A stretch of 64,000 nt of DNA, from NCBI RefSeq assembly GCF_902713615.1, contig NC_052149.1, positions 200,876,059-200,940,058 on the forward strand, written 5' to 3'. Origin of the DNA: Scyliorhinus canicula. Its lineage: Eukaryota. The translations under genes and the position numbers were made by a program. Within the stretch, counting starts at the first letter, position 1. Every line of letters begins with the position of its first letter. This document shows, piece after piece, positions 2,982-56,741 of the stretch. The notes below the pieces were generated by a model. The model did no database searches and was not told the DNA's origin. It saw nothing but the letters and a program-made list of their open reading frames with translations.

Positions 2982-3328
2982 ATAGAACATAGAACAGTAC
3001 AGCACAGAACAGGCCCTTCGGCCCTCGATGTTGTGCCGAGCAATGATCACCCTACTCAAACCCACGTATCCACCCTATACCCGTAACCCAACAACCCCCC
3101 CCCCCCCCCCCCGGCCTTAACCTTACTTTTTAGGACACTACGGGCAATTTAGCATGGCCAATCCACCTAACCCGCACATCTTTGGACTGTGGGAGGAAAC
3201 CGAAGCACCCGGAGGAAACCCACGCACACACGGGGAGGACGTGCAGACTCCGCACAGACAGTGACCCAGCCGGGAACCGAACCTGGGACCCTGGAGCTGT
3301 GAAGCATTTATGCTAACCATTATGCTAA
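2982..3328 (-). mobile_element. HE1/V-SINE-type tRNA-derived SINE with a tail matching the young CR1
   Basis: Box B-like GGTTCGGTTCC, V-SINE-like body, and tail TACAGCACAGAACAGGCCCTTCGGCCC..GATGTTG.GCCGA (+ strand) nearly identical to 52099-52140. Confidence 0.9.
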
Positions 3329-3439
3329 CTAATGAGACAGAATTAATCGATCATCTCATAATAAAGGACTCTCCAGGTAAGAGTTATCATAACATGTGAA
3401 ATTTCACATTCAGTTTGAGGGTGAGAAATGTGGGTCTGA

Positions 3440-4745
3440 AACGAGTGACTTAAACTTAAATAAAGGCAATTTCAACGGTAGGCAAACGGAGTTTCCCACA
3501 GAGTATTGGGGAAATAGATGAAAAGGTAAAACGGAAGATAAGCAGTGGTTGGCATTTAAGGAGATATTTCAATATTTCATAATGCTTAACAAAGTTATAT
3601 TCCATTGAGAAAGAAAGACTCCACGAGAAGGATGCCCTATCAAAAGAAGTTGCGGATGTTATCAAATTGGAAGAGAAAGCATACAATGCTGCAAAGATTA
3701 GTGGTAGGGCTGAAGATTGAGTAAATTTTAGAAACCAGCAAAGGACGACTAAAAAAATAATAAAGGTGGAATATTTAGCTAAAGGAAACATTGCCTTTAA
3801 AGGATGAGACTGGAGATTAATAATGTGAAACAAAGGAATGGCAGAAACTTTGAACAGATATTTTGCATCTGTCGTCAGGGTAGGCCGCACAAAAAGCATC
3901 CCAATGATAGTACAAAATCAAGGGGCAAAGGGGAGAGAGAAACTTAAAACAATCACCAATCATTAGAAAATACTGGGAAAACTAGGATTCACAGCTGACA
4001 GGCCCCTAGACCTGATGGCTTGCAACCTTGGGTCTTAAAAGAACTGACTACAGAGATAGTGGATGCACTCATCGTGATCTTGCAAAATTCCATAGATTGG
4101 AAAATTGCACATATAACACCTCCATTCAAGAAAGGAGGGAGATAGAAAGCTATAGGTCAGTTTCCCAATATCTGTTATTGGGAAAATGATGGAAGCAGTT
4201 GCAGGACATTTAGAGAATCATAACACAATCAAATAGAGTCAACATGGTTTTATGAAAGATAAATTGTGCTTGACAAATTTATTAGAATTCTTTGAGGAGG
4301 TAACAAGCAGGATTGATAAAGGGGAACTTGTAGATGTGTATTTGTATTTCCAAATTTGTTAAAGTGCCTCATAAAAGATTACTGCACAAATGAGACCTCA
4401 TTATGTTGGGGGTAATATATTAGCATGAATAGAGGATTTGTAAACTAACAGAAATTGTACTTAGAGGCATGCCACAGGAATTTGCTAGTGCCTCAACTAT
4501 TTACAATCAATAATAACTTGGATTAAGGGATTGAGTGGCCAAATGTTCTCATCATACAAAGATAGGTAGGAGGGTTAATTTTTGGAATCCTCTACCCAGA
4601 CAACAATGAAGGCTATATATTAATGGCTGAATTAGACAGGTCTTTGATCCAGAAGGGTGTGGTTTGGTTTGGGGGGGGCTGGGGTTAAGCCACAAATTAG
4701 ATCAGCCACAATCTTATCAAGTAATGAAGCAGGCTCAAGAGGACA
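3440..4745 (+). mobile_element. Decayed CR1 (HER1-like) LINE
   Basis: Remnants such as PDGLQPWVLKELTTEIVDAL and SQHGFMKDKLCLTNLLEFFEEVTSRIDKG; many stops and deletions. Confidence 0.8.
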
Positions 4746-4749
4746 GGAG

Positions 4750-5077
4750 GGGCAGCACAGTAGCCTTGTGGATAGCACAATTGCTTCACAGCTCCAGGAT
4801 CCCAGGTTCGATTCCGGCTTGGGTCACTGTCTGTGTGGAGTCTGCACGGGTTTCCTCCAGGTGCTCCGGTTTCCTCCCACAGTCCAAAGATGTGCAGGTT
4901 AGGTGGATTGGCCATGATAAATTGCCCTTAGTGTCCAAAATTGCCCTTAGTGTTGGGTGGGGTTACTGGGTTATGGGGATAGGGTGGAGGTGTTGACCTT
5001 GGGTGGGGTGCTCTTTCCAAGAGCCGGTGCAGACTCGATGGGCCGAATGGCCTCCTTCTGCACTGTAAATTCTATGA
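4750..5077 (+). mobile_element. HE1/V-SINE-type SINE, near full length, classic CR1-type tail
   Basis: GGGCAGCAC head, box B GGTTCGATTCC, V-domain-like body, ends GGCCGAATGGCCTCCTTCTGCACTGTAAATTCTATGA. Confidence 0.92.
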
Positions 5078-5489
5078 TGACATAATGTCTGCTCTATTGC
5101 TTATGTAAATTGAGACTGATAAGATTTTTTTTGCACGGCAAAAGGACACAGAGCTAAGGAAGATAGCTGGAATTAAAAAATATACATCAGCCATGGAAGG
5201 CTGGAATGGTCTACCTCCTATTCCTAACTGAAGGAGCTCTACCTCAAAGTGAGTTACAGTTCCTCTCACTGCCTTGGCTAACACAAATCCCTTAACCATC
5301 ATCACATTAACTGGTCATTGAGTTCAGGTGTGTGGGGACCTTGCAAGTGCAAACTGGCTGAACTACCAAAATTACATGATTTCCTATGAGGCACTTGGGG
5401 GCGAGGGAGCATGATTAGTAACATAAAACGATGTGTGCGTGTATGATGAATGGAGTGGAATTCCTGCTCTCTGAACATTATCTAGTGTG

Positions 5490-6718: not shown

Positions 6719-7019
6719 GGCATAGTGGTTAACACTAAGGGTCGGGTTCAATTCCAGCCTCGGGTGACTGTGGCATATGCACTTTCTCCCCGTGTCTGCG
6801 TGGGTTTCCTCTGGGTGCTTTTGTTTCCTCCCACAGCCCAAAGATGTGTAGATTAGATGGATTGGCTATGCTAAAGTGCCCCTCCAAATGGCTATGTGGG
6901 GTACATGGTTCGGGGTGTGGGGTGGGCCTAAGTAAGGTACTTTTTCCACTAAAAAAAAGGAGTCGGTGGTGACTCGATGGGCCAAATGGCCTCCTGCACT
7001 GTAGAGATTCTACAATTCT
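6719..7019 (+). mobile_element. HE1/V-SINE-type SINE (older copy)
   Basis: Same head, body and tail as 4750-5077, more diverged. Confidence 0.85.
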
Positions 7020-8457: not shown

Positions 8458-8461
8458 GTAA

Positions 8462-11165: not shown

Positions 11166-11430
11166 GGGCGGCATGGTAGCACAGTGGCTAGCATTGTTGC
11201 TTCACAGTGCCAGGGTCCTAGGTTCGATTCCTGGCTTGGGTCACTGTCTGGGTGGAGTCTGCACATTTTCCCCTGGGTGCTCCGGTTTCTTCCCAAGCCC
11301 CGAAAGATGTGCTGTTAGGTGAATTGGACATTCTGAATTCCCCCTGTGTACCCGAACAGGTGCTGGAATGTGGAGCTTTTCACAGTAACTTCATTGCAGT
11401 GTTAATGTAAGCCTACTTGTGACAAAAGAT
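11166..11430 (+). mobile_element. HE1-headed SINE with alternative (Rex1-like) tail
   Basis: Head and body as HE1; tail CCCGAACAGG..GGAATGTGG..CTTTTCACAGTAACTTCATTGCAGTGTTAATGTAAGCCTACTTGTGACAA. Confidence 0.88.
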
Positions 11431-11714
11431 TTTTTAAACAAGTGCAATTTTAATTAGTTAAACCCTGTGCATAAATCAGGGATCCTCCTGCCTTGGCTCT
11501 GTCCACCTGAACCGTGGGTAAATAGGATATGTGTCCCTAATGTGCAATCTGAATTAGATATTGAGGTCTTTTACTCAATTTACCTACACTGTATCAAAGG
11601 TCACCTGGAAAGGGAGCCGTAGCATCCTTTGAAGCTGAGTTCCTTGGAATGCCCAATATTTGGTTACTTTTGGAAAGTGCAGGTATTGAACAGGAGACTT
11701 TATCACTGTATTTA

Positions 11715-12008
11715 GGCATGGCATGTGGCACGGTTAACACTGCTGCCGTACAAGGCCAGGGACCTGGGTTCAATTCTGGCCTTGGGTGGCGGTGCAATGT
11801 GGAGTTTACACTTTCTCCCTGTGTCTGTGTGGGTTTCCTCCCACAGACCAAAGCTGTGCATGCTGTGGATTGGCCATATTAAATTGCTCCTTAGTGTCCA
11901 AAAGGATAGGTTGTGTTATGGAGATAGGGCGGGAGGCTCTTTTGGAGGGTCAGTGCAGACTCGATGGGCTGAATGGCCTCCTGAACTGTAGGGATTCTAT
12001 ATTCCTAC
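11715..12008 (+). mobile_element. HE1/V-SINE-type SINE (older copy)
   Basis: Diverged head and body with ...GCAGACTCGATGGGCTGAATGGCCTCC..GGATTCTAT tail. Confidence 0.82.
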
Positions 12009-13865: not shown

Positions 13866-16230
13866 TTTAGTTCATTAGCATAATGACATGGTCTGATTAC
13901 TCATCTTTTACCCTGACTATTACTACTAATCATTACTATATTGATTATTTCTGTTCATGTCACAGGTTCTATGCAAGTTGACTTCTATAATCCCTTTATC
14001 ATTAATTGGCCCTTTATCATTAATTGGCCCTTTTCATTGACAATACTACCTCTGTACCAATTTGCTTTTCCTGCAGCAGACTTTGGCTCTTTCTGTATAT
14101 ATTCTCCAAGCCCTACAACCTGGTTTCTCATTTTTTTTTAAATTGATGTGGAAGTTTTATCAATAGTATTGAGCTCCTGATGCCAGGTATTTGATTGTTA
14201 GCCTATCGGTTTCTTAATGCATCACTTCTCTCAATCATGACTGTTCAACCTACAGCTATATTTCTTGGCTTCTTCATTTTTAGTTTAAATATTTTCTGAT
14301 TGAAGCAAATTCTAACCTAATCTTACATTCTATTGAACATCTAATTATTTATAAAGAAAAATCTCATTGTCAAAGCCCTCAAGTGTTCACTCCCTGGCTT
14401 TCCAAATGAGCACTAAAGCAAAATCTGAATGACACTAACACACCTTGCTTGTATTGCTCCATCCACTAACTGCTTCCCCCCCCCCCCCCCCCCCCCCGTT
14501 CAAATGCAAATATCCTAAAACATGACAATATATGTGCTTATTTTTCATCACAGAGAGCAGATAGATCATACTGGCTTTTATTATTCTAATGCCATAGGCC
14601 ACTAGGTTGTGCCTCTGTTCAGTTTTTCAATGTAACGAAAGTTGCAAGTTTTTTTTAGGGAGGAGAATTATGCTATCTTGACCTTAATTATCTGTTTTTA
14701 TTGTTCTTTGTGAATCAAAGCTGAAGAGGATAGGGCACCCACCTTGCTCCTAGAACCTCTTGGCTGTGGTACAAGAGCAGTATAGTAGAGACTTGGCATA
14801 TCTGATTTTCCCTCCCATCCCTATGAGATAATTTCTCAGGCCCTGTGGCAGTCTGACTGAGAGTTCAGTGATGTGGAAAAATCAAATCTGTGCTTTGTAT
14901 GGTTGTAGCAGTATGCTGCCATCCAGTGTTTCATGGTATTCATATTCCGTGGGCTTATTACCATCTCTACTTCTCAGTGAAATGATTTCTGTGGCCAACT
15001 AAGATTTGGGATGTGAAATATTATTAAAAAAAGAAAGTAGTTAGGAGCAGGAGTGACCTATTTATCCCTTTGAGCCTATACTGTCATTCTATTACAGCAT
15101 GGTACCTTGCCTCATATATGACAAGTGACTCTCCTACTAATAAGTAATTCATTGACTGAGGTATTTCAGGATATTGTGAGGCAGTGAATAACACTATATA
15201 AATGCAAAATTAAAAAATAAAATCTTAACTTCACTTACCCACTTTTTTCTCCATATCCCTTGATGCCCTTACCGAACAAACTTGACAAATACACAGAAAT
15301 TAAGCTTTTTTATTTCTCTCCCATCAAGATACAGAATCTTGTTGGGCATGGAGAATCTTTGTTCAAGTAGCCATTTTCATGTGCCTACCGTAACAGTGCA
15401 GTGGACATCACAGTTGGACCCATCTTTTCTTGGCATTTGCACAGCTGCATTTTTCCAGCATAGGTCACTATCTGATTTACTTTCACTCTACCTTGAGACG
15501 CCGATGCAAATTGTAAACCCATACTGCTGCCTGGCTAAGAATAACTAACTCAGTACAGCCTGATTATGTGGCTTAGCGTTGCACCATGTGATGTTTTTAA
15601 TCAACAAAGTCAATGGGGAATTAAAATATGTTTGGGGCAAATTATTGAGGCATCAACACAGGATACTGTTACAGTGGTCGGTTATAGGTTTAGCACCTTT
15701 GGCCTCAATTTAGAAATTGGTGAGGGAAAAGGCTGCCTCACAGGGAGGGGGGAAAGAAAATACAGCAAGAATAGTAATACTAGACTGCTACAGATTTCCT
15801 AATGGTCATCTTGGAACATAATTAGTGGAGAAACTAAAGGCATTTTATTTATTGTGGAAACAAGAAAAGTTTAATTTTTAAATGTCATCAATGCTGGATG
15901 TGGCATGTTATCATCTAACATATGGCCACGGCAGCACTTGGAATTATGCCTACTATCCTCTGTACCAGATAGTAGCTCAACTGTATGGAGATTCTCTACA
16001 AGCATTCATGAGCTGAACTTTTGCACCTCCCAGTAGAGACTGAGAATAGACTGGCCAACTGCATGGCTGGGTATGATCTGTAGTACAGGAAGAGTGGAAA
16101 ATGCAGACGAGTATCCTCTATCTGTGTTATGGCACAGCATTGTTTTTAATAAGTCATTCTACATTATATTTGGTAATGTGAAATGGTAACTAGACCAATA
16201 AATTAATACTTTTAAAACTTGAGTCCTCTA

Positions 16231-16464
16231 GGGCAGCATGGTGGCACAGTGGGTTAGCCCTGTTGCCTCACAGCACCGAGGTCCCAGGTTCGATCCCGGC
16301 TCTGGGTCACAGTCCGTGTGGAGTTTGCACGTTTTCCCCATGTTTGCGTGGGTTTCGCCCTCACAACCCAAAGATGTACAAGCTAGGTGGATTGAACATG
16401 CTAAACAAAAATTGCCCCTTAATTAATTGGAAAAAAATGAATTGGGTACACTAACTTTAAAAAA
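16231..16464 (+). mobile_element. Short HE1-related SINE with A-tail and 16-bp TSD (L1-type insertion)
   Basis: TSD AAAACTTGAGTCCTCT (16214-16229) / AAAACTCGAGTCCTCT (16465-16480), preceded by TTT; no CR1 tail. Confidence 0.9.
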
Positions 16465-17011
16465 AAAACTCGAGTCCTCTGCCTTGAAAAGGTGCTGTGG
16501 GTAAGGAAAAATACATATCACTGGATAAAAACATGTGAATGCATCGTCTGCAATCAGTGCAGTAAAAGGGGTCACTAGACCAGGTTTTCCAGATTTTTTT
16601 GTTTCCAGTCTTAAAACAGTTCACTACATGACTTGGAATGGGAGAGCTCCCCTCTTTTCACTTGCTCAGCAACAGAAATAAATAATTTAGATTTTTGATC
16701 AATTCTGAAAATATTGCTGAAAAGAGAGATGTTGCTGAAACTTTTTGTCTTGCACTCATGAGAACAAATGCAAGACATTTTTTAATAGTCACAATTCTTC
16801 TACAGTGGAAAAGGGTGTTGATTGCAAGTAGACCGATTGCCCAAGGTGTCGCCATGGAGAAAGCAACAGGTAACTAGAGGTTCCTTAAATTCCCAGGTAA
16901 TTTAAGAAATGAGACTTGAACATAATCCTTTTGTTTGCAGAAGCCAATTCCTGCATATGAATGTATATCACTTCTAGCAAGTGCATCTTTTTAGCACACT
17001 CAATAATTGCT

Positions 17012-17390: not shown

Positions 17391-17435
17391 TATTAAAGTT
17401 TGCATTTTTACACTGTACAAGTGCTGCCCAATCAT

Positions 17436-17659
17436 TTCTTGAATATAAATTTGTATCCAATCCACTTTTTCCAATTAAGGGGCAATTTAGTGTGGCCAAT
17501 CCACCTACTCTGCACATCTTTGGGTTGTGGGGGCGAACCCCACGCAAACACAGGGAGAATGTGCAAACTCCATACGGTCAGTGACCCAGAGCCAGGATTG
17601 AACCTGGGACCTCGGTGCCGTGAGGCAGCTGTGCTGACCACTGTGCTACCGTGCTGCCC
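17436..17659 (-). mobile_element. Short HE1-related SINE (A-tail family)
   Basis: Same family as 16231-16464; flanked by direct repeat GTGCTGCCCAATCAT (17421-17435 / 17651-17665). Confidence 0.88.
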
Positions 17660-17714
17660 AATCATAGAATCATATTCGACAATAGATGATTTGCCTTGGG
17701 CTGGTGGAATGCAG

Positions 17715-18454: not shown

Positions 18455-18771
18455 GGGCAACCTGGTAGCACAATGGTTAGCACAGTTGCTTCACAGTTCC
18501 AGGTTTCGATTCCTGGCTTGGGTCACTGTCTGTGCGGAGTCTGCACGTTCTCCCCGTGTCTGCGTGGGTTTCTTCCGGGTGCTCCGGTTTCCTCCCAGTC
18601 CAAAGATGTGTGCTTTAGGTGGATTGGCCATGCTAAATTGACCTTAGTGTCCAAAAAAGGTTAAGTGGGGTTACTGGGATAGGGTGGAGACATAGGCTTG
18701 AGTAGGGTGCTCTTTCCAAGGGTCGGTGCAGACGCGATGGGCTGAATGGCCTCAGCTCATTCTATGATTCT
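18455..18771 (+). mobile_element. HE1/V-SINE-type SINE
   Basis: Head, body and CR1-type tail as at 4750-5077. Confidence 0.88.
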
Positions 18772-24879: not shown

Positions 24880-25745
24880 AGGAAGTTGAGCTGAACAGAA
24901 TTGATGGGACTCAAAGTGGGAAAAGCATAATTGATGGCACACAGTCCCAGAATGTTAAGGGGGCTCGGAGCAAAAACTACATCCTTGGATATGGGAGGTT
25001 GGAATGGGGGCTGCATATTCAACAGCTCTGTTTAAGAGGGAGAAAGGATAGATAATCAAGTAACTACAGACTAGAAGATTAAAATATAGAAATAATTATC
25101 AACTTAAAAATACATTCTCCCTCTTAAATCATATCTTACATTGTGTTCTTTGAGTGAATAATGAAGTGTATTGATGAAATGAAATGAAATGAAAATCACA
25201 TTGTCACGAGTAGGCTTCAATGAAGTTACTGTGAAAAGCCCCTAGTCGCCACATTCCGGCGCCTGTCCGGGGAGGCTGTTACGGGAATCGAACCGTGCTG
25301 CTGGCCTGCTTGAAAAGCCAGTGATTTAGCCTAGTGAGCTAAACCAGCGGGATTGCAACAAAATATTATGCATGTGGGTTGTCAAAAGGCTGGCCTGGGG
25401 GCTTGTTAATAAAATTAAACTTGACAGTATTAAAGCATGTGGAGCACTGTCGATAGAAAGCTGGTTGAAAAGGATAGAAAACAAATTAGTTAATGGACGT
25501 CTTTTGGTCAGGAGGAAAATAAACAGTAGTGTTCCACAAAGGTCAGTGTTGGGATCACTGCTCTGCATAGAGAGATATTATACAAATAAAAACATTTGAT
25601 GTGGGTTGCCCATGGGGACAAAAATATCAATTCGTCGAAGAGGGGTGGGGAAAAAAAAAAAAAGAGTACACCAAATTAACTATGAAGGAAACTGTAAGTG
25701 ACTTCAGGAACACAGATTAGTCAATTGCATTGATAGATTGGATAA
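24880..25745 (+). mobile_element. Decayed CR1 RT fragment interrupted by a short SINE
   Basis: IESWL..VPQRSVLGSLL motif (ORF 25372-25599). Confidence 0.6.
25174..25348 (-). mobile_element. Very short tRNA-derived SINE with Rex1-like tail and (TTTCA)n end
   Basis: Minus strand: TTTAGCTCACTAGG (box A), GGTTCGATTCCC (box B), CAGGCGCCGGAATGTGGCGACTAGGGGCTTTTCACAGTAACTTCATTGAAGCCTACTCGTGACAA, then (TTTCA)n. Confidence 0.85.
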
Positions 25746-25766
25746 TCTTTAAATGAGAAAAATTAC

Positions 25767-25855
25767 CTGAATAGACGTTAAAATTGATGAAACATCATAA
25801 GTTGGGCTCCAGCGATTCTGTAAAATGTCTAAACATATGCTGCCATCTGCATAAA
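25767..25855 (-). CDS. UBE2B: UBE2B exon 5 (catalytic Cys88)
   Basis: ttttcag|(V)[29 protein letters not shown]|gtaatt; 89 nt. Confidence 0.97.
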
Positions 25856-25979
25856 CTGAAAACAGAAAACACGGCAGCAAATTTTGTTTCTGACAGTAAA
25901 AAAAAATGTAACTATGACTTACTGCCTCACTGCTTTGGTTTTTGGTTGATAGCCAAACAAAGACATCAAAAATAAGGTA

Positions 25980-27225: not shown

Positions 27226-27794
27226 TAGGTTTAGTATTTATATGATGTTTTCAGGGTTTTGAAAATTGCCACTGATTCGTCCTTCAAAATTCTCTATGAA
27301 CCAGACCATTAAGGGTGACATTCAGCAACAGCACTCTTGCCTTCCTCTTCACAGTATATCCCATATTGGAACAGACCATATAGCTTTCATCAAATTGATA
27401 TTTAACATTGAACATATTTATCAAACTACTTTCAAGAAAGGAAACTCCACATTCATTGCATTTGGGGTGCCCTGAGGAAGGTTGACAGCTCTCTCTGTAG
27501 AGGATCCCATCAACAAAGATTTAGCCAGAACCTGAAACCTGTATTTGGCAGTCAGAGGTTAAGCAATAATGTGCACCCACCGCTGATCTTAAAGCTGGCC
27601 CTAGAAATCTAGCAATCTCTGTGGCATGGATTTCCCCTTTCCCGGCGGCAGTATAAATCTGGCAACAAGTCAAGGCAAATGTCCAGCAGCAATGAGATTA
27701 GCAAGCAAGTTAAGCAACCAATCTCATTAGCAAACTAATAAGGTAGTGAACTAAATTCTGAATGGATTAAGCCAAAATATTATAAACAAGCAAA

Positions 27795-32430: not shown

Positions 32431-32550
32431 ACCCGTAACAGCCTCCCCGAACAGGCGCCGGAATGTGGCGACTAGGGGCTTTTCACAGTAACTTCATTTG
32501 AAGCCTACTCGTGACAATAAGCGATTTTCATTTCATTTTCATTTCATTTT
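32431..32550 (+). mobile_element. 5'-truncated copy of the short SINE with Rex1-like tail
   Basis: Nearly identical to the reverse complement of 25174-25285; ends GTGACAATAAGCGA(TTTCA)n. Confidence 0.85.
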
Positions 32551-34022: not shown

Positions 34023-34233
34023 AACCGTCCCACTAGAATCACACTAAAATCTGCAGAAACAATTAGGGTTATTGCATTCCGGGTTAATGCATTCAGGTGT
34101 GAGATTTAACTCGATGGCAAGTGTTAATTATTGAACAACTTCTCTGGTGCTGAAAAATTGATTTTACAAGTGTTGAGCTTCATTCCCCCTGAAGAAGTTT
34201 ATTGTTGAAGTTTGTTTAAAAAATAGCAGAGAG

Positions 34234-37200: not shown

Positions 37201-38381
37201 CCCGGGGAACATCGACGGGGGATTTCAGAGCTGGTACAGGGTGGGCATACGGCAGCTGAAGGACCTGTTTATAGAGGGGAGGTTTGCGAGCCTGGGAGGG
37301 CTGGAGGAGAAGTTTGAGCTCCCCCCGGGAAACATGTTCAGATATTTACAAGTGAAGGCATTTGCTAGGCGGCAGGTGGAGGGGTTTCCCCTGCTCCCCA
37401 GTAAGGGGGCGAGTGATAGGGTGCTCTCGGGGGTCTGGGTCGGAGGGGGGAAGATATCAGACATCTACAAGATAATGCAGGAAGCGGAAGCAGCATCGGG
37501 GGAGGAGCTGAAAGCCAAGTGGGAAGGGGAGCTGGGAGAGCAGATAGAAGACGGGACGTGGGCGGATGCACTGGAGAAGGTCAACTCTTCCTCCTCGTGT
37601 GCGAGACTGAGCCTCATTCAATTTAAGGTGCTGCATAGAGCTCACATGACGGGGACAAGGATGAGCCGGTTCTTTGGGGGTGAGGACAGGTGTGTCAGAT
37701 GTCTGGGAAGCCCAGCGAACCATGTGCATATGTTCTGGGCATGTCCGGTGCTGGAAGGGTTCTGGAAGGGGGTGGCAAGGACGGTGTCGAAGGTGGTGGG
37801 GTCCAGGGTCAAACCAGGATGGGGGCTTGCGATCTTTGGGGTCGGGGTAGAACCGGGGGTACAGGAGGCTAGGGAGGCCGGAATACTGGCCTTTGCGTCC
37901 CTAGTGGCTCGACGAAGGATATTAATTCAATGGAAGGACGCGAGGCCTCCAAGCGTTGAAACTTGGATTAACGATATGGCTAGCTATATTCAGCTAGAAA
38001 GGATCAAATTTGCCCTGAAAGGGTCGGTACAGGGATTCGCCAGGCGGTGGCAACCTTTCCTTGACTTTTTAGATCAGAGATAGACGTTCGGGGTCGTGGC
38101 AGCAGCAACGGGGGGGGGGGGGGCAGCAAGGGTCGTGGGGGGACACGCACGACTGTAACGCGGGCAAGCCTGCTCGCTGCTCATGTCTGAAACTGTAGGC
38201 TGCCTTGGTTGTTAAGGTTGCCTGGGGGGGGGGGGGGGGGGGGGGGGGGGAGGACTGGTGCGCGCGAGAGGGCGGGCGAGGGAGGGACATTTGCCTAGAG
38301 GGATTGTGTTGTAAATAATTTAAAAATTAGTAGGGGTAAATGTCTGTATGGAAAAACTCTTTCAATAAAAATTATTTAAAA
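34234..38381 (+). mobile_element. Young L1-clade LINE, 5'-truncated just upstream of ORF2, in UBE2B intron 2 (antisense to the gene)
   Basis: Perfect 16-bp TSD AAAAAATAGCAGAGAG (34218-34233 / 38382-38397) at a TTT/AAAA site; AATAAA at 38364 and an A-tail; G-run-rich 3' UTR. Confidence 0.97.
34290..38083 (+). pseudogene. L1 ORF2 (APE endonuclease - RT - CCHC) broken by one 1-bp frameshift at ~35044
   Basis: EN motifs ITWNVRGL, LQETH, NVYAPN, GGDFN, SRIDF, SDH; RT motifs PGPDG, YRPISLLN, DAEKAFD, RQGCPLSP, YADD; C-terminal CVRC..H..WAC. Two long ORFs join at GAG GCG CGG [G]AC CAG. Confidence 0.93.
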
Positions 38382-39464
38382 AAAAAATAGCAGAGAGAGC
38401 ACTTGAAGAAATTGTTTGAAGAGGCTAAGTTTGCTCGCCCCAAGTACCACATATACCTTATGGAGAGGGCCATGCTGGAAACACAGAATTAGAAGAGGCA
38501 ATCTTTATGACAAGCCCACAAGAAGTCTCTGCGCATCTGCCAGAGAGGTGAACTGTTTCTTCGTCACAGAAAACTAATTCTGGGTCAGGCTAGTTCCTAG
38601 AAAGAAATCCCAATGGAGCAGAATTAGCTCATTTTTGCACGAACAAGTGCTGAGAGCACTGCATTCTTCAGTGGGAGGGAGGAGAACATGAAAATCAGTT
38701 TAGGCTTGCAGTCTTCATCACTAGCTGAAGCTTCAAGTTGGACTGTGAGCGCATTAAAACATTGAGAGATCTCTGCACAAGTTCGCAGGTTAAAAAAAAA
38801 GGCCATTGGATAAAGTGACATCATGAATCAACAACTGGAGAGGAGAAAATTGGAAATAAAACAAGAACCCATCACTTACCATGTCTGCAAAAGTGCTCTA
38901 CATCTAACTCACGATTCGTATTTTCATGAAGCATTCAGTATAAATAGTTTACTTATTTTGATACTGATGAACTTATTTCATCATTTTGTGTGAGATTTTT
39001 GATCCTTAAACAAATATAGCTTAATGCAATTGAAGTTGAGAATGGTATTTCACATTTCAACTACCATCAAGACTCTTCTGTGTGGGATTGCTGAATTTGG
39101 TTGTGCAAAGTATGAAAGTCTGTGTACTTGCAAGAAGGCAGTTATGATAGCTCTAAACTCATTTCTTTACAGGCAGCAGGCATAAGTCTGAGCTATATTT
39201 GAACCCAAGCATCAGCAGCATAACAACTATGCATTAACCTACAGCACCACCCTTTCCCAAAATATATATTTTAATTGAAGTATCTTGGGTGTACAATTGT
39301 CCATTCTTTGTGTATTTATAGCTATAATCTGTAAGTATTGCTTTGCATTGTGCAAGTTTTGTTTGAAACATGTAAAGCTCTTGAAAATGAAGAATAATTT
39401 TCTTTTTGCTGTTGGCCACCTCACTCCAACTCACCCTACAAAATCAATTAAGTTCCAATTCAAA

Positions 39465-39642
39465 GTGTTAGCACTGCTGCCTCACAGCATCCGAGGACCT
39501 GGGCTCGATCCCGGCCCCAGGTCACTGCCCTGTGTGGAGTTTGCACATTCTCCCCGTGTCTGTGTGGGTTTCACCCCCACAACCCAAAGATGTGCAGAGT
39601 TGGTGGATTGGTGACACTAAAACTGCCCTTAATTGGGAAAAA
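39465..39642 (+). mobile_element. Short HE1-related SINE (A-tail family), partial
   Basis: GTTAGCACTGCTGCCTCACAGC..CCCACAACCCAAAGATGTG..GCCCTTAATTGGG. Confidence 0.8.
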
Positions 39643-41418: not shown

Positions 41419-41720
41419 ATAATAATAATCTTTATTGTCAGAAGTAGGCTTACATTAACACTGCAATGAAGTTACTGTGAAAATCCCCTAGTAGCCACAC
41501 GCTGGCACCTGTTCGGGTACACCGAGGGAGAATTCAGAATGTTCAATTCACCCAACAAGCACGTCTTTCAGGACTTGTGGGAGGAAACTGGAGCACCCAG
41601 AGGAAACCCACGCAGACACAGGGTGGACGTGCAGACTCTGCAGAGTGTGACCCAAGCCGGGAATCGAACCTAGTACCCTGGTGCTGTGAAGCAACAGTGC
41701 TAGCCACTGTGCTATCGTGC
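41419..41720 (-). mobile_element. HE1-headed SINE with Rex1-like tail and (ATT)n end
   Basis: Same chimera as 11166-11430; ends CTGACAATAAAGATTATTATTATT on the - strand. Confidence 0.88.
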
Positions 41721-44789: not shown

Positions 44790-45250
44790 TGCCCCGGCCG
44801 GCCCCGCCCCCGGGCTCGCCCCCTCCCCCCAGCCCCGCCCCCGGGCTCGCCCCCTCCCCCCAGCCCCGCCCCCGGGCTCGCCCCCTGCCCCCAGCCCCGC
44901 CCCCCACAGGCTCGCTCCCTGCCCCCAGCCCCGCCCCCCACGGGCTCGCTCCCAGACCCGCCCCGCGCGGGCTCACTCCCAGCCCCGACCCCCCACGAGC
45001 TCGCTCCCTCGCCCAGCCCCGCCCCCCACGGGCTCGCTCCCTCGCCCAGCCCCGCCCCCCACGGGCTCGCTCCCGGCCCCGCCGCTCCACGGGTTCACTC
45101 CCAGCCCCGCCCCCCGCGGGCTCGCCCCCTCCCCCAGCCCCGCCCCCCCTACGGGCTCGCTCCCAGCCCCGCCCCCCACGGGCTCGCCCCCAGCCCCGCC
45201 CCCGCCCCCCCCCCGCCCCCGCCCCGCCCCCGCTCTCCCTCCCCCCGCCC
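44790..45250. repeat. GC-rich minisatellite, ~28-33-bp unit, ~14 imperfect copies
   Basis: Unit approximately CCCAGCCCCGCCCCCCACGGGCTCGCTCCC(T); each contains a GC box CCCCGCCCC. Confidence 0.9.
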
Positions 45251-47164: not shown

Positions 47165-48213
47165 CTGACAAGCTGGTTGACAAACTGGCCTTTGACAAGG
47201 TGCCGTACAGGAGGCTGCTAAATAAGATATGAGCCGATGGTGTTAGGGGCAAGGTACTGGCATGGATAGAGGATTGGTTGACTGGCAGGAAGCAGAATAA
47301 AGGGTCCTTTTCAGGATGGCAGCCAGTGACTAGTAGTGTTCCGCAGGGGTCAGTGTTGGGACAACAGCAATTCACAATATAATGATCTGAAAGAAGGAAG
47401 TGAGGGCATTGTCGGTATGTTTGCAGATAATACAAAGATATGTAGAGGGACAGGTTGTGTTCAGGAAGCAGAGAGGCTGCAGAAGGACCTGGACAGGCTA
47501 AGAGGGTGGCCAAAAAAGTGACAGATGGAATACAATGTAGAAATTGGTAGGAAGAATAGCGGCATAGACTATTTTCTAAATGGGGAAAGGCTCCGGAAAT
47601 CAGAAACCCAAAGGGACTTAGGAGTCCTTTTTCAGAATTCTCTTTAGGTTAACATGCAGGTTCAGTTGGCAGTTATGAAGGCAAATGCAATGTTAGCATT
47701 CATGTCGAGAGGGCTGGAATACAAGAGCAGGGATGCACTATTGAGCCTGTATAAGGCACTGGTCAGACCCCATTTGGATGATATGAGGAGCAGTTGAGGA
47801 CTCTGGATCTGTACTCAATGAAGTTTAGAAGGATGAGGGAGGGGAGCTTATTGTAATTTACAGAACACTGAGAAGCCTAAAGAGAGTGGACGCGAAGAGG
47901 ATGTTTCCACTAGTAGGAGAAACTAGAACCCGAGGGCACAGCCTCAGAATGAAGGGATGATCCTTTAAAACCGAGATGAGGAGGAATTTCTTCAGCCAGA
48001 GGGTGGTGAATCTGGAACTCATTGCCGCAGAAGGTTGTGGAGGCCAAGTCACTGAGTGTCTTTAAGACAGAGATAGATAGGTTCTTGATTAATAAGGGGA
48101 TCGGGGGTTATGGGGAGAAGGCAGGAGAATGGGGATGAGGAACATGTCAGTTATGATTGAATGGCAGAGCATACTTCATGGGCCGAATGGCCTAATTCTT
48201 CTCCTATGTCTTA
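47165..48213 (+). mobile_element. Moderately decayed CR1 LINE (RT C-terminal half to tail)
   Basis: AFDKVPYRRLL, SVPQGSVLG, MFADNTK, LQKDLDRL, LYKALVRPHL and GGGCCGAATGGCCTAATTCT..CCTATGTCTTAT tail. Confidence 0.85.
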
Positions 48214-48219
48214 TAGTCT

Positions 48220-49255
48220 AAATTTACCTTCTTCAATCTGTTCCATTGCATTTGCTGCTCCAAATGCGGTCTATCAACATTGGAGAGACTAAAACGCAGA
48301 TTGGGTGACCTCTTTGCAGAACACCTTCGGTCCATCAGCAAGCAGGACCCAGAGCTCTTGTCGCTTGGCATCTGAACACAGCGTCCTGATCTCATGTCCA
48401 CATGTCTGCCCTTGACCTGCTGCAATGTTCCAGTGAAGCCCAGTGCAAACTGGAGGGACAGCACCTTGCATTCCGATTAGGCACTTTACAGCCTTCCGGA
48501 CTTAACGTTTTACCAGCTTCAGACTGTGAACTTTCTCCTCACCTTCACCCCATTTTTATTTCCATCAATTTATTTTTGTTTCTTCCATCAATCTGTTTTC
48601 CCCCCTACCACCGTCTCCCCTCTCCCAGCTCACCCCACTAGGACCATCTCTTACCTGTTCCAAGTCATCCCTTGACCCTGCCTACTTTTGTTCAGCCATT
48701 AACACATTATGATCTCTTCTTCTTTTCTTTTTTAAATAAATTTAGAGTACTCAATTCAGTTTTTCCAATTAAGGGGCAATTTAGCGGGGTCAATCCACCT
48801 ACCCTGCTCATCTTTTGTTGTGGGGGCGAAACCCACGCAAACATGGGGAGAATGTGCAAACTCCACACGGACAGTGACCCAGAGCCGGGATCGAATCTGG
48901 GACCTCGGCGCCATGAGGCACATTCTGATCTCTTAATCTGCCACTATCAGCACCCTTCTTCATCATTATCACTACCATTTACATTCCCTTTGTCTTTTTG
49001 TCCACATCATCTTTGTCAATCTTTCCCTAGTCTCCACCTATCACTGGTCCACTATCTAGCCCACTGCTCCACCCCCCACCCAGAACTGTATAAATCTCAT
49101 CCTATTTCCAGTTCTTTCTAGCTTTGACAAAGAGTCATCCAGACTTGAAATGTTAGTTCCCTTCTCTCTCCACAAATGCTGCCAGACTTGCTGAGATTTT
49201 CCAGCATTTTCTGTTGTTGTTTCAGATTCAAGCATCCACAGTAATCTGCTTTTAA
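48220..49255 (+). mobile_element. Penelope-like element 3' part (GIY-YIG + terminal repeat with decayed hammerhead motif), interrupted by a SINE
   Basis: SSNLFHCICCSKCGL..IGETKRRLGDLFAEHLRS and KLEGQHLAFRLGTLQPSGLN; terminal region with TTGACAA-GAGTC/GACTT-GAAA. Confidence 0.8.
48719..48918 (-). mobile_element. 5'-truncated short SINE (A-tail family) with 16-bp TSD
   Basis: TSD CACATTATGATCTCTT (48703-48718) / CACATTCTGATCTCTT (48919-48934); target reads TT/AAGA on the - strand. Confidence 0.85.
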
Positions 49256-51194: not shown

Positions 51195-52077
51195 TGTTAT
51201 GGGCCAGGGTTTAACAACTCCAAAGTATATTATGGAGTCCACCTAACCTGCAACATTTATGTTGAATTTGGCTAAGGTGAGCACATGACCCCACCTTTCA
51301 AGTGTTATTTAACAGAGTTCTTAGGCACTTTTAATTAAAAAAAACAAGCTTTATTCTAAGAATAAAGAATAAACATACAAGCAAGAATTTGTATCAACTA
51401 CAAACATTAAAAAAAAAATTTAGAGTGCCCAATTCATTGTTTCCAATTAGGGGGCAATTTAGCGTGGCCAACCCACCTAACCTACACATCTTTGGATTGT
51501 GGGGGCGAAACCCACACAAACACAAGGAGAATGTGCAAACTCCACACGGACAGTGACCCAGAGCGGGGATCGAACCTGGGTCCTCGACGCCATGAGACAG
51601 TAGCGCTAACCACTGCGCCATCGTGCCGCCCTATCCACTACAAACATAAAGACCCCATACAGCTACAGTAATCTATGTATAACCCTTAATGAATTCCCCC
51701 TTAACTGTTCCAATTCAATAACAAAATCCAAGTAAAACCAGAAACCCCTTTTCAAAGGCGTGACCCAGCACATGGCATTCTCACTGTCTTTAAGACTTGT
51801 TATTGATACTCTGTTCCCCTTTTCAAACAGCAGATGTGAATTCCTTCCAGAAAGCAATTATCTCTTTGAAGTTACCAAGCAGTCTGGAAACAGCTTTTAT
51901 AATGAAGATAGCGAGGCAGGCCAAAAAAAGTCTGTTCTCTGTCTGAGTCCACCGCAGCCAAATGTGAAAGCGAAACCAAAAGAAAACTCCCAGAGCCACA
52001 GCCCAGCTCCACCCACACAATGGCATCACAGAAGCCATGTGATAAGACAAAAACATTTCTTAAAGAGACACATGACA
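51195..52077 (-). mobile_element. Solo LTR (TG...CA), paralogous to 61168-61839, carrying a SINE insertion
   Basis: Minus strand TGTCATGTG...CCCATAACA; TATAAAA at 51901-51895, AATAAA near 51350; 4-bp TSD ATAT at 51191-51194 and 54640-54643 (displaced by the CR1). Confidence 0.82.
51408..51631 (-). mobile_element. Short HE1-related SINE inside the solo LTR, 16-bp TSD
   Basis: TSD TATCAACTACAAACAT (51392-51407) / TATCCACTACAAACAT (51632-51647). The empty site TATCAATTACAAACAT occurs once in the other LTR copy (61373-61388). Confidence 0.92.
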
Positions 52078-52080
52078 ATA

Positions 52081-54636
52081 GATAGATAGATAGAGAAATA
52101 CAGCACAGAACAGGCCCTTCGGCCCACGATGTTGCGCCGAACTTTTGTCCTAGGTTAATCATAGAATTTTGGACAATTTGTCATGGCCAATCCACCCAAC
52201 CTGCACATCTTTGGACTGTGGGAGGAAACCGGAGTACCCGGAGGAAACCCACGCAGTCACGGGGAGGATGTGCAGACTCCACACAGACAGTGACCCAAGT
52301 CGAAATCGAACTTGGGACCCTGGAGCTGTGAAGCAATTGTGCTATCCACAATGCTACCGTGCTGCCCTTAAGAAGTTAACCTACACTCCCTTATTCTACC
52401 CTAATCCAAGTACCTATCCAATAGCCGCTTGAAGGTCCATAAATTTTCCGACTCAACTACTACCACAGGCAGTGCATTCCATGCCCCCACTACTCTCTGG
52501 GTAAAGAACCTACCTCTGACATCCCCTCTATATCTTCCACCATTTATCTTAAATTTATGTCCCCTTGTAATGGTGTGTTCCACCCGGGGAAAAAGTCTCT
52601 GACTGTCTACTCTATCTATTCCCCTGATCATCTTATAAACCTCTATCAAGTCGCCCCTCATCCTTCTCCGTTCTAATGAGAAAAGGCCTAACACCCTCAA
52701 TCTTTCCTCGTATGACCTACTCTCCATTCCAGGCAACATCCTGGTAAATCTCCTTTGCACCTTTTCCAAAGCTTCCACATCCTTCCTAAAATGAGGTGAC
52801 CAGAACTGCACACAGTACTCCAAATGTGGCCTGACCAAGGTTTTGTACAGCTGCATCATCACCTCACGGCTCTTAAATTCAATCCCTCTGCTAATGAACG
52901 CTAGCACACCATAGGCCTTCTTCACAGCTCTATCCACTTGAGTGGCAACTTTCAAAGAACAATGAACATAGACCCCAAGATCTCTCTGCTCCTCCACATT
53001 GCCAAGAACCCTACCATTAACCCTGTATTCCGCATTCAGATTTGTCCTTCCAAAATGGACAACCTCACACTTGTCAGGGTTAAACTCCATCTGCCACTTC
53101 TCAGCCCAGCTCTGCATTCTATCTATGTCTCTTTGAAGCCGACAACAGCCCTCCTCACTATCCACAACTCCACCAATCTTCGTATCATCTGCAAATTTAC
53201 TGACCCACCCTTCAACTCCCTCATCCAAGTCGTTAATGAAAATCACAAACAGCAGAGGACCCAGAACTGATCCCTGCGGTACGCCACTGATAACTGGGCT
53301 CCAGGCTGAATATTTGCCACCCACCACAACTCTCTGTCTTCTATCGGTTAGCCAGTTTGTTATCCAACTGGCCAAATTTCCCACTATCCCATGCCTCCTT
53401 ACTTTCTGCATAAGCCTACCATGGGGAACCTTATCAAATGCCTTACTAAAATCCATGTACACTACATCCACTGCTTTACCTTCATCCACATGCTTGGTCA
53501 CCTCCTCAAAGAATTCAATAAGACTTGTAAGGCAAGACCTACCCCTCACAAATCCGTGCTGACTATCCCTAATCAAGCAATGCCTTTCCAGATGCTCAGA
53601 AATCCTATCCCTCAGTACCCTTTCCATTACTTTGCCTACCACCGAAGTAAGACTAACTGGCCTGTAATTCCCAGGGTTATCCCTATTCCCTTTTTTGAAC
53701 AGGGGCACGACATTCGCCACTCTCCAATCCTCTGGTACCACCCCTGTTGACAGCGAGGACGAAAAGATCATTGCCAACGGCTCTGCAATTTCATTTCTTG
53801 CTTCCCAGAGAATCCTTGGATATATCCCGTCAGGCCCGGGGGACTTGTCTATCCTCAAGTTTTTCAAAACGCGCAACACATCTTCCTTCCTGACAAGTAT
53901 CTCCTCAAGCTTATCAGTCTGCTTCACGCTGTCCTCTCCAACAATATGGCCCCTCTCATTTGTAAATACTGAAGAAAAATACTTGTTCAAGGCCTCTCCT
54001 ATCTCTTCAGACTCAATACACAATCTCCCGCTACTGTCCTTAATCGGACCTACTCTCACTCTAGTCATTCTCATATTTCTCACGTATGTGTAAAAGGCCT
54101 TGGGGTTTTCCTTGATCCTACCCGCCAAAGATTTTTCATGCCCTCTCTTAGCTCTCCTAATCCCTTTCTTCAGTTCCCTCCTGGCTATCTTGTATCCCTC
54201 CAGCGCACTGTCTGAACCTTGTTTCTTCAGCCTTACATAAGTCTCCTTCTTCCTCTTAACAAGACATTCAACCTCTCTTGTCAACCATGGTTCCCTCACT
54301 CGACCATCTCTTCCCTGCCTGACAGGGACATACATATCAAAGACACGCAGTACCTGATCCTTGAACAAGTTCCACATTTCACTTGTGTCCTTCCCTGACA
54401 GCCTATGTTCCCAACTTCTGCACTTCAATTCTTGTCTGACAGCATTGTATTTACCCTTCCCCCAATTATAAACCTTGCCCTGTTGCTCGCACCTATCCCT
54501 CTCCATTACTAAAGTGAAAGTCAGAGAATTGTGGTCACTACCTCCAAAATGCTCCCCCACTAACAAATCTATCACCTGCCCTGGTTCATTACCAAGTACT
54601 AAATCCAATATGGCCTCCCCTCTGGTCGGACAATCT
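52081..54636 (-). mobile_element. Young CR1 (HER1-like) LINE, 5'-truncated within the endonuclease domain
   Basis: Uninterrupted ORF2 of ~745 codons, (TCTA)n tail, ACAATA duplicated at both ends (52075-52080 / 54637-54642). Confidence 0.95.
52159..52367 (-). mobile_element. HE1-type SINE embedded in the 3' UTR of the young CR1, tail internally deleted
   Basis: Full GGGCAGCACGGTAGC head and body lie 33 nt after the CR1 stop codon; the CR1 tail resumes at ~52158. Confidence 0.9.
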
Positions 54637-54638
54637 AC
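52401..54638 (-). CDS. CR1 ORF2 (EN C-terminus + RT), open but lacking its 5' end
   Basis: PTRGEAILDLVL, SDHN, KSPGPDG, NYRPVSLTS, QHGF, DFSKAFDKV, PQGSVLGP, FADDTK, RRMRGDLIEVYK; no stops. Confidence 0.9.
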   Translation of the reverse strand, partial: VDCPTRGEAILDLVLGNEPGQVIDLLVGEHFGGSDHNSLTFTLVMERDRCEQQGKVYNWGKGKYNAVRQELKCRSWEHRLSGKDTSEMWNLFKDQVLRVFDMYVPVRQGRDGRVREPWLTREVECLVKRKKETYVRLKKQGSDSALEGYKIARRELKKGIRRAKRGHEKSLAGRIKENPKAFYTYVRNMRMTRVRVGPIKDSSGRLCIESEEIGEALNKYFSSVFTNERGHIVGEDSVKQTDKLEEILVRKEDVLRVLKNLRIDKSPGPDGIYPRILWEARNEIAEPLAMIFSSSLSTGVVPEDWRVANVVPLFKKGNRDNPGNYRPVSLTSVVGKVMERVLRDRISEHLERHCLIRDSQHGFVRGRSCLTSLIEFFEEVTKHVDEGKAVDVVYMDFSKAFDKVPHGRLMQKVRRHGIVGNLASWITNWLTDRRQRVVVGGKYSAWSPVISGVPQGSVLGPLLFVIFINDLDEGVEGWVSKFADDTKIGGVVDSEEGCCRLQRDIDRMQSWAEKWQMEFNPDKCEVVHFGRTNLNAEYRVNGRVLGNVEEQRDLGVYVHCSLKVATQVDRAVKKAYGVLAFISRGIEFKSREVMMQLYKTLVRPHLEYCVQFWSPHFRKDVEALEKVQRRFTRMLPGMESRSYEERLRVLGLFSLERRRMRGDLIEVYKMIRGIDRVDSQRLFPRVEHTITRGHKFKINGGRYRGDVRGRFFTQRVVGAWNALPVVVVESENLWTFKRLLDRYLD

Positions 54639-54960
54639 AATATGAACATACGAACAAGAAACAGGAGGAGGCAATTCAGCCCCTTGAGCTTACCCCACCA
54701 TTTCATCAGATTATGGCTGATCTGATAGTAACCTCAGACCTGAGTCCCACCTACACCCAATAACCTATCACCTATAAACTCCAGCGGATACAAGCCTAGC
54801 CTGTCCAACGTTTCTCAGAACATAACCCACCCATTCCAGGTATTTGTCTGTTAAACTTCTCTGAATTACGTCCAATGCATTTATATCCTTCCTTAAATAA
54901 GCTGACCAGTACCTTACACAGTATTCCAAATGTGGTCTCACTAGTGCCCTATACAACTGC

Positions 54961-55280
54961 AGCACAATCGCTTCACAGCTCCAGGGTCCCAGGTTCGATT
55001 CCCGGCTTGGGTCACTGTCTGTGCGGAGTCTGCACATCCTCCCCGTGTGTGCGTGGGTTTCCTCCAGGTGCTCCGGTTTCCTCCCACAGTCCAAAGATGT
55101 GCAGGTTAGGTGGATTGGCCATGCTAAATTGCCCTTAGTGTCCAAAATTTCCCTTAGTTACTGGGTTATGGGGTTATGGGGATAGGGTGTAGGTGTTGAC
55201 CTCGGTTAGGGTGCTCTTTCCAAGAGCCGGTGCAGACTCGATGGGCCGAGTGGCCTCCTTCTGCACTGTAAATTCTATGA
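54961..55280 (+). mobile_element. Young HE1/V-SINE-type SINE, slightly 5'-truncated
   Basis: Nearly identical to 4750-5077; splits a CR1 reading frame. Confidence 0.92.
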
Positions 55281-56460
55281 AATTACCTGGCTACATTTTT
55301 ATTCAATTCCCCTCCCAATAAATTATAACATTCTATTTGCTATCCTAATTACTTGCTGCACCTGCACTTTTGTGACTAATGCACTCAGACAATGAGATCA
55401 ATCTGCATCTCAGAACTCTGCAATCTCTCACCATTTAGATAATATGCTTATTTTTTCTTCCTGCCAAAATGGACAATTTAATATTTTCTCGCATTATACC
55501 CCATTTGCCAGATATTTGCCCACTCACTTAACCTATCTAGGTCCCTTTGTAGCCTCCTTATGTCTTCTTCAGAACTTACCTTTCTACCTATCTTTATGTC
55601 ATCAGCAAATATGACGACCATCCATATAATGCCTTCATCCGTCATTTATATAAATTGTAAATAGTTGAGGCCCCAGCACCGATGATCCTTGTGGCACACC
55701 ACTTGTTACATCTTGCTAACCTGAAAAATACCCATTTATGCCTACTCTCTGTTTACTGTTAGCAATCAATCTTCTATCCATGTCAACATGTTGCCCGCTA
55801 TACCATCAGCTTTTATTTTCTGCAGTAACCTTTGATGTGACACTTTATCAAATCCCTTCTGGAAATTAAGTACAGTACATCTATCAGTTCCCCATTATCC
55901 ACAGCACACGCTATTTCTACACCGCTTGAGCTTATCCAAGTGCTATAGTTTCTTTAATAAAAACTTCCAACATTATACCCTATGACAGATGTTAAGCTGA
56001 TGGACATGAAATTTCCCACTTTCTGTCTCTTGCCCTTTTTGAATAATGGAGTTGCATTTACTATCTTCCAATCTAATAGGACCTTCCCTAAATCAGAGGA
56101 GTTTTGGAAAATGAAAATCAATGCATAACCTATCTCACGAGACACTTCTTTTAAGACCCTAGGAAGAAGTCCAGAGGACTTGAACTCTTATCAGCTCGCA
56201 GCTTCTACAATTTTCTCAGTACCACTTCTTTAGTGACTGTATTTTCCTGAGTTCCTCCCTCCTTTCTATTTCCTAATGTATAGTTATTTTTGGGGTGTTA
56301 CCTCAATCTTCTGGTGCAAAATACATGTTTCATTCATCTGGCATCTTGTTTTCCATTTTAAATTCTACAGACTCACTTTTTATAAAACCATGCTCAATTT
56401 GTTAACTCTTTTTCTTTTTAAAACATTTATGAAAACTCTTACTATCTGTTCTCATATTTC

Positions 56461-56741
56461 ATAGAATAATAGAACCCTACACCGCAGAAGGAGACCATTC
56501 AGCCCATCAAGTCTGCACTGACCCTCTGAAAAAGCACCCTACCCAGGCCCCCACCCTATCTCCGCAACCTTGTAACCCCACCTAACATGCTCATCTTTGG
56601 ACTGCAGGAGGATACGGCAGCATCTAGAGGAAACCCACGCAGACATGGGAGAGCGTGCAAACTCCACACAGACTGTAACCCAAGGCCAAATTTGAATCTG
56701 GGTCCCTGTTGTGAGGCAACAGTGCTAACCATTGTGCCACC
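56461..56741 (-). mobile_element. HE1/V-SINE-type SINE (older copy)
   Basis: Head, body and CR1-type tail are recognisable. Confidence 0.82.

Follow-up and report, generated by a model that had tools for sequence, protein, structure and literature searches.

A putative shark V-SINE group with three head/body lineages and variable 3' ends that probably changed its LINE partners

Can a short interspersed nuclear element (SINE) group change the long interspersed nuclear element (LINE) on which it depends? This question is raised by a 64,000-nucleotide (nt) stretch of the genome of Scyliorhinus canicula (contig NC_052149.1, positions 200,876,059 to 200,940,058; hereafter the window, with coordinates counted from its first nucleotide), in which SINE copies of similar build end in four different ways: in an HE1-type tail (class (a)), in a tail resembling the end of a young CR1 LINE (class (b)), in a tail with the motif GTGACAA (class (c)), or in an A/T-rich end (class (d)). 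The original prediction for this locus held that one and the same head and body carries these four tails interchangeably, that the lineage repeatedly switched its partner among CR1 subfamilies, Rex1/Babar and L1, and that all the partners lie in this window. Our analysis leads to a modified picture: The copies probably represent a shark V-SINE group, HE1-like by description, which comprises three head/body lineages with variable 3' modules and has switched partners. Most likely, the four 3' ends let the copies borrow the copying enzymes of different LINEs.

The window contains 15 copies of this SINE group (Table 1). A self-BLAST search with four representative copies as queries and alignment with MAFFT recovered all twelve copies of the original prediction, with position and tail type as described there, and added three more. 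Six loci belong to class (a), one to (b), two to (c) and five to (d), and one further (a)-like copy is nested in a LINE. The heads carry a B box GGTTCGATNCC, which occurs 15 times in the window with at most one mismatch (1.75 expected; none of 100 shuffles reaches 15), and an A-box-like motif TAGCACAGTGG about 35-45 nt 5' of it, as is typical of V-SINE/HE1 heads. ARAGORN folded none of the V-SINE heads as a tRNA, which leaves their tRNA origin putative, and Rfam returned zero matches across the window. In sharks and rays, HE1 is listed as a V-SINE whose partner is the CR1-like HER1 (Ogiwara et al. 1999, 2002, as given in the table of PMC3747384 and in PMC4824008). The copies analyzed here resemble this system in their tRNA-type head with A and B boxes, in their conserved central core and in having a 3' tail in common with a CR1-type LINE; moreover, the host is close to Scyliorhinus torazame, a species in which HE1 was described. 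The group would be built of a tRNA-like RNA polymerase III (Pol III) head, followed by a core that is conserved and a 3' module that varies.

How the classes are related was judged from the heads and cores, with the tails left out. In this region, the identity of the (b) copy to young (a) copies amounts to 95% (copy at 54961) and 92% (copy at 4750). Between the two (c) copies it is 84%, and between them and young (a) copies 80-83%, while the five (d) copies share 80-90% among themselves and 70-81% with all others. A maximum-likelihood tree, rooted at its midpoint, supports a (d) group (98/97) and a (c) group (97/94), places (b) within the cluster of young (a) copies (93/90) and joins (c) to this young (a)/(b) cluster (93/89), with the old (a) copies outside. 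An 18-nt duplication (GGGTTTCCTCCGGGTGCTCC-GGTTTCCTCC) is found in (a), (b) and (c) and is absent from (d), which carries diagnostic substitutions over its whole length; class (c) deviates in the 3' part of the core. Judged by these sequence relationships, the copies appear to sort into three head/body lineages, namely (a)+(b), (c) and (d). The postulate of a single head and body is thus borne out for (a) and (b), whereas (c) and (d) form distinct, supported lineages, and the notion of interchangeable tails on one body has to be given up, as tails (c) and (d) are each tied to a lineage of their own. Because these lineages are separate, each of the two tails would have been acquired once, long ago, and then amplified on its own.

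The extent of this separation, with the (c) and (d) groups 17-27% diverged from (a) and (b) and with (d) devoid of the 18-nt duplication, suits a different explanation as well: The four classes might be independently assembled SINE families that have an ancient tRNA head and a V-core in common, in which case no switching would have occurred here except perhaps from (a) to (b). We regard this as improbable, however, because all classes are collinear in head, core and the order of these parts and because (c) clusters with young (a)/(b) to the exclusion of the old (a) copies and shares the duplication with them. From this position of (c) it follows that in its lineage a CR1-type tail would have been replaced, which favors partner switching within one group over separate assembly.

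The clearest case of a changed end lies inside the first lineage, where (a) to (b) appears, from the sequence comparison, to be a recent swap of the terminus. A candidate donor is found in the window itself. The open reading frame (ORF) at 52401-54674(-) contains an RVT_1 domain, its product shares 92% identity with a protein of Scyliorhinus torazame and 43-55% with reverse transcriptases (RTs) of birds, turtles and Xenopus, and it is distant from the ORF2p of L1 (E 4e-24); full-length relatives possess an apurinic endonuclease (APE) domain. At its 3' end the element forms a stem-loop that is followed by (TCTA)n and lacks poly(A). We take the element at 52078-54674 to be a CR1, a placement that is based on its best named relatives and the form of its 3' end rather than on a reference tree with L2 and Rex1. 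When the terminal 59 nt of the (b) copy are compared with the 3' end of this CR1 (52082-52146), 52 of 59 positions agree, and over 52099-52140, the stretch for which near identity had been predicted, 40 of 42 do. A second CR1, on an ENA contig (L001; 79% amino-acid identity), agrees with the (b) terminus at 57 of 60 positions, including the (GTTCTAT)n repeat, and more distant relatives reach 65/81 (L019) and 81/115 (L020). Tail (b) is consequently homologous to the 3' ends of two CR1 elements. Immediately 5' of these 59 nt, the (b) copy has an (a)-type mid-tail, nearest to that of the copy at 18455; its head lacks the first ~10 nt.

The termini of (a), which read ...GTGCAGACTCGATGGGCCGAATGGCCTCC..., and that of (b) are also linked by their structure: One common two-tier hairpin can be adopted by every (a) and (b) tail as well as by seven CR1 3' ends. 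In an alignment of 14 sequences (7 SINE tails and 7 CR1 ends) 90% of the cells pair, as compared to 34-47% with slid partners. Compensatory changes occur at five pairs of the hairpin; columns 13/48 are UA in (a) and CG in both the young CR1 lineage and (b), and columns 14/47 show a compensatory change of GC versus AU. None of 500 shuffles equals the observed covariation score. Such a shared hairpin is predicted by the stringent model, in which the LINE enzyme recognizes the 3' end (PMC4176376). In the first lineage, the RNA would hence end in a two-tier stem-loop plus a short repeat that is recognized by CR1 RTs; in (b), head, core and mid-tail would have been kept, and the last ~59 nt exchanged for a hairpin from a different, younger CR1 lineage. 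A partner switch between two CR1 lineages, one serving (a) and the other (b), is well supported.

Whether the tail classes are amplified subfamilies or single rearrangements is directly visible for (a), (c) and (d), which occupy 6, 2 and 5 loci; class (b) has one locus. We therefore placed Logan contigs on positions 2900-5100, taken from three source-species samples and from one relative (run X9). In all four, the summed contig depth is 10^6 in every SINE bin and 3-10 in the flanks, values that express presence and repetition, not copy number, because they derive from contigs and not from reads. As judged from the window and the contigs, no segment is better conserved or deeper than the core in either species. 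In the mid-tail bin of (b) (3048-3121) the depth is 2x10^6 in the source species versus 6x10^3 in the relative, which suggests a lineage-specific amplification of this mid-tail variant. In run X13, the consensus of the loose ends that follow the core reads as a (d) tail. A separate observation concerns the mid-tail of class (a) (4906-5026): In all four runs many contigs join the end of the core to the terminal hairpin and skip ~100-120 nt, which suggests that a short HE1-type subfamily with an internal deletion is abundant.

The single (b) copy invites the suspicion that the odd tails, above all (b), are local rearrangements after insertion or nested LINE fragments rather than transposing subfamilies, and the window does hold a true nesting of a SINE in a CR1 3' untranslated region (UTR), at 52158-52367. 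A word search with the 44-residue stop-free stretch across the (b) junction returned no candidates, the query being too short to be informative. We nevertheless consider this explanation very improbable: The (b) terminus replaces exactly the homologous (a) hairpin, with no (a) end left downstream; the mid-tail and terminal bins of (b) each lie ~10^6-fold above the flanks in the three samples, the terminal bin being a mixture of (b) SINEs and CR1 3' ends; and (c) and (d) reside at 2 and 5 independent loci with differing flanks.

The nested copy itself sits between the stop codon and the 3' hairpin of the young CR1 (3' UTR 52078-52400). It ends in AAATTCTATGAT, as (a) copies do, with most of its tail gone. 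In the related CR1 L001, the 3' UTR has the length of the window 3' UTR minus the 210-nt SINE and contains no SINE, which rules out that the SINE is a built-in feature of the young CR1 family and identifies it as a secondary insertion. Pol III read-through from such a nested SINE would yield a SINE core fused to a new CR1 tail; the arrangement thereby illustrates one possible route by which head and core might gain a new LINE end. The (b) copy, which retains its mid-tail, does not derive from the nested one.

In the second lineage, (c), the ~90-nt tail is also found on an unrelated SINE with a tRNA-Leu-like head, and it would therefore stem from a third source, presumably a LINE outside the window. 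Class (c) would be the sister of the first lineage in this scheme. The tails (c) of the V-SINE copies give no fold better than shuffles. With CR1 and L1 proteins and 120 CR1 relatives as tblastn queries, no RT remnant was found attached to any carrier of tail (c) in the window, and a scan of metagenome contigs with the invariant 19-mer of this tail gave 16 loci, all of them chance matches with unrelated flanks. As a side observation, the V-SINE version of the tail contains a 12-nt insertion, CAGTGTTAATGT (11390-11402 and 41455-41467), in the loop of a hairpin that the version on the tRNA-Leu-like SINE can form. Near the latter SINE lies a decayed LINE RT fragment (26320-27171(-)), ~31% identical to CR1 relatives and missing its 3' end, which may belong to another clade (L2 or Rex1-like). 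We rejected this fragment as the LINE of the SINE at 25195-25352, since an exon-like ORF with a ubiquitin-conjugating enzyme core (25749-25997(-); Pfam UQ_con, E 3e-9), a UBE2-type exon of the host or else a piece of a retrocopy, lies between them.

The third lineage, (d), differs from the others in how its copies are inserted. The copies at 16231, 48719 and 51408 are each flanked by 16-nt direct repeats with one mismatch, which none of 100 shuffles reproduced in any of the three cases; the A/T-rich end and the 16-bp target site duplications (TSDs) anticipated for these copies are thus confirmed, apart from that mismatch. Their targets are TTTT/AAAA, TT/AAGA and TTT/ATGT. No TSD of at least 15 nt occurs on (a), (b) or (c) copies, among which one old (a) copy has a repeat of 12 nt. 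Clean long TSDs are hence present on three of the five (d) copies versus none of ten other copies (Fisher exact p about 0.02). Where the 3' end of (d) is intact (four copies), the tail is A-rich in three and T-rich in the fourth. A-rich tail, TSDs within 7-20 bp, TT/AAAA-like targets and 5' truncation are the attributes of SINEs of the relaxed type. The added (d) copy at 17436-17659 calls for separate mention: Its 15-nt repeat ATGATTGGGCAGCAC (17421-17435 and 17651-17665) takes in the first 9 nt of the head and may reflect either a TSD whose 5' junction has long microhomology or an insertion beside an older head remnant.

An element with the same habits is resident in the window. The L1 at 34234-38380 encodes Exo_endo_phos and RVT_1 domains, and its 1022-residue ORF matches human L1 ORF2p with E 2e-134 and teleost proteins named LINE-1 with 43-44% identity; it starts within ORF2, lacks ORF1 because the copy is 5'-truncated, ends in AATAAA plus A10 and is inserted at TT/AAAAAA, with a TSD of 16-17 nt that none of 100 shuffles reproduced. 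An ORF2 with L1-type APE and RT, a polyadenylation signal, an A-tail and a long TSD together place it in the L1 clade. Its nearest relatives in the word-search protein collection share 41-48% identity with it, as compared to 74-92% for the CR1, and its lineage seems poorly represented in public data. The insertion signature of (d) is that of this L1. Mobilization of (d) by L1 is, in view of this signature, a reasonable but inferred assignment: Class (d), a more divergent lineage, would be inserted in the manner of L1, with ~16-bp TSDs, TT/A-type targets and 5' truncation.

The 3' ends of (d) have a feature of their own: Four of the five copies end in a conserved block, AATTGGAAAAAATGAATTGGGTACTCTAAATTTA, which is followed by variable A/T-rich sequence. 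This block might be the tail of another stringent LINE (Tx1-like or RTE-like, for instance) that likewise produces long TSDs and A/T-rich ends, so that (d) would not be driven by L1. Its conservation speaks for this, as does the copy that ends in T10 instead of A. There is, besides, an observation on the L1 end (38340-38380, TGGAAAAACTCTTTCAATAAAAATTATTTAAAAAA), which is weakly similar to the end of the (d) tail, for instance 48719-48760 (TGGAAAAA..CTCT..TTATTTAAAAAA); the likeness is of low complexity and significant for one copy, not for three, which leaves room for a LINE other than L1. The block occurs nowhere in the window outside the (d) copies, however, and the (d) tails form no stable LINE-like hairpin and no fold better than shuffles, while (d) agrees with the resident L1 in TSD length, TT/A targets and 5' truncation. 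We therefore hold another stringent LINE to be unlikely as the driver of (d) and keep L1 as the preferred candidate. For the more far-reaching statement that one V-SINE group uses both stringent LINE machineries (of two CR1 lineages and a third source) and the relaxed machinery of L1, with (d) as an L1-mobilized V-SINE, we consider the chances to be about even.

Several points weigh against a V-SINE group with switched partners as outlined here. The partner lineage of (a) has no close copy in the window, since the best agreement of (a) tails with a LINE end, be it of the window or of a fetched contig, is 74-84% over 31-65 nt; closest to them in form is the end of a CR1 (L018) with just 50% protein identity. 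Class (b) is seen once, with the mixed terminal bin described above. No LINE with tail (c) occurs in the window, where the other carriers are the SINE at 25195-25352 and the piece at 32437-32550. Among the (d) copies one ends in a T-run, the TSD of a second is ambiguous and a third lacks one; their conserved 3' block would be needless under a purely relaxed L1 mechanism, and the L1 copy looks younger than they do. Finally, because the root of the tree is a midpoint, the direction of the tail switches is inferred, as is their number. Of the repeated partner switching originally envisaged, the step between two CR1 lineages stands, and L1 enters by way of the TSD signature as a candidate partner; the window supplies the partner of (b) and plausibly that of (d), but no close one for (a) and no LINE with tail (c).

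Apart from the SINEs and LINEs collected in Table 1, the window contains a GC-rich minisatellite (44807-45211; about 10-15 copies of the 27-nt unit CCCAGCCCCGCCCCCCACGGGCTCGCT; 65% GC), for which Pfam gave no match.

Table 1. SINE copies and LINE-derived elements in the 64-kb window, in order of position.
Position	Strand	Element	Features
2982-3328	-	SINE, class (b)	head/body and mid-tail of (a) type; terminal ~59 nt (2982-3040) a younger CR1 hairpin + (GTTCTAT)n
4750-5077	+	SINE, class (a)	head complete (A and B boxes); core; tail of CR1 type, its two-tier hairpin stable (-21.2 kcal/mol, z -3.0)
6719-7012	+	SINE, class (a)	old, diverged
11166-11432	+	SINE, class (c)	own head/core sublineage; ~90-nt tail ...CCCGAACAGG..TTTTCACAGTAACTTCATT..GTGACAA + short A/T repeat
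11715-12003	+	SINE, class (a)	old, diverged; without 18-nt duplication
16231-16464	+	SINE, class (d)	TSD AAAACTYGAGTCCTCT at 16214-16229 and 16465-16480; target TTTT/AAAA
17436-17659	-	SINE, class (d)	added copy; 15-nt direct repeat ATGATTGGGCAGCAC, ambiguous TSD
18455-18770	+	SINE, class (a)	terminus (a)-type; mid-tail resembling that of (b)
25195-25352	-	second, unrelated SINE	head tRNA-Leu(CAA)-like by ARAGORN; tail (c) without 12-nt loop insertion; (ATTTC)n end
27785-28231	-	CR1-like LINE, 3' fragment	decayed; hairpin end of same type as 47165-48228
32437-32550	+	carrier of tail (c)	5'-truncated; SINE or LINE end indistinguishable; no RT homology upstream
34234-38380	+	L1 LINE	5'-truncated; APE + RT ORFs, AATAAA, poly(A); 16-17-nt TSD AAAAAATAGCAGAGAG (34217-34233, 38381-38397)
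39467-39642	+	SINE, class (d)-like	added copy; 5'-truncated, 3' end decayed
41419-41720	-	SINE, class (c)	second locus
47165-48228	+	CR1-like LINE fragment	decayed; GGGCCGAATGGCC hairpin end distantly like tail (a)
48719-48918	-	SINE, class (d)	5'-truncated; 16-nt TSD AAGAGATCAKAATGTG; A-rich tail
51408-51631	-	SINE, class (d)	full length; 16-nt TSD ATGTTTGTAGTKGATA; T-rich end
52078-54674	-	CR1 LINE	young, 5'-truncated; 757-aa RT ORF intact (52401-54674); 3' hairpin + (TCTA)n end matching tail (b)
52158-52367	-	SINE, (a)-like	added copy; internal tail deletion; inside 3' UTR of young CR1
54961-55280	+	SINE, class (a)	5'-truncated; youngest-looking; head/body 97% to 4750 copy
56461-56764	-	SINE, class (a)	old; 12-nt direct repeat, 1 mismatch, if 5' end ~20 nt past 56744

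The exchange of tails and partners is not new in itself, which weakens the claim of novelty that had accompanied the prediction. That V-SINEs exchange their tails for those of LINEs with higher activity was, according to the citation in PMC5499810, already proposed when the superfamily was defined (Ogiwara 2002); the same article calls module exchange of SINEs well known, MetaSINEs are mosaic conserved-core SINEs (PMC4824008), and the conserved-core SINEs of bivalves have at least four LINE partners, with one tail occurring on several heads (PMC11481361). The window shares with these systems one head/core type combined with tails of several LINE clades, and a tail, (c), carried by both a V-SINE and a tRNA-Leu-like SINE. 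It differs in that the combinations occur together in one vertebrate genome, within 64 kb, and in that one of them apparently follows the tail-independent L1 route. Relative to HE1/HER1, it adds (b) with a second CR1 lineage, (c) with a non-CR1 tail and (d) with an A/T tail and an L1-type signature. In cartilaginous fish, a related case is that of CmiSINE and SacSINE1-CM of the elephant shark, two families with different heads and cores and a common LINE-derived tail, that of L2-2_CM (PMC5499810); they belong, however, to the superfamilies CORE and Deu, and the LINE is an L2.

For (d), the nearest parallel is provided by the mammalian Alu, B1 and ID elements, which are mobilized by L1 in the relaxed manner (PMC3747384, PMC4176376). 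Like these, (d) has an A-rich 3' end, TSDs of ~15-16 bp, TT/AAAA-like targets, 5' truncation and no LINE hairpin; unlike these, it has a V-SINE-type head and core, a conserved non-A block at the 3' end, mixed A/T tails and a cartilaginous fish as host, and it is known here from its sequence. Our search of the open literature, with Repbase and Dfam outside its scope, found no paper on these shark subfamilies or on an L1-type V-SINE in V-SINEs or cartilaginous fishes.

The established picture of SINE module exchange remains unchanged by these results, which provide a clear local example and no new principle. Within this picture, the replacement of the terminal hairpin alone, from (a) to (b), is an event that can be dated and tested, and the matched pairs of SINE and LINE ends are useful for assays of 3'-end recognition. 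Class (d) marks a possible shift from tail-dependent mobilization by CR1 to tail-independent mobilization by L1 in a cartilaginous fish. The window thereby presents a compact natural case of how a SINE lineage may survive by changing the LINE on which it depends.

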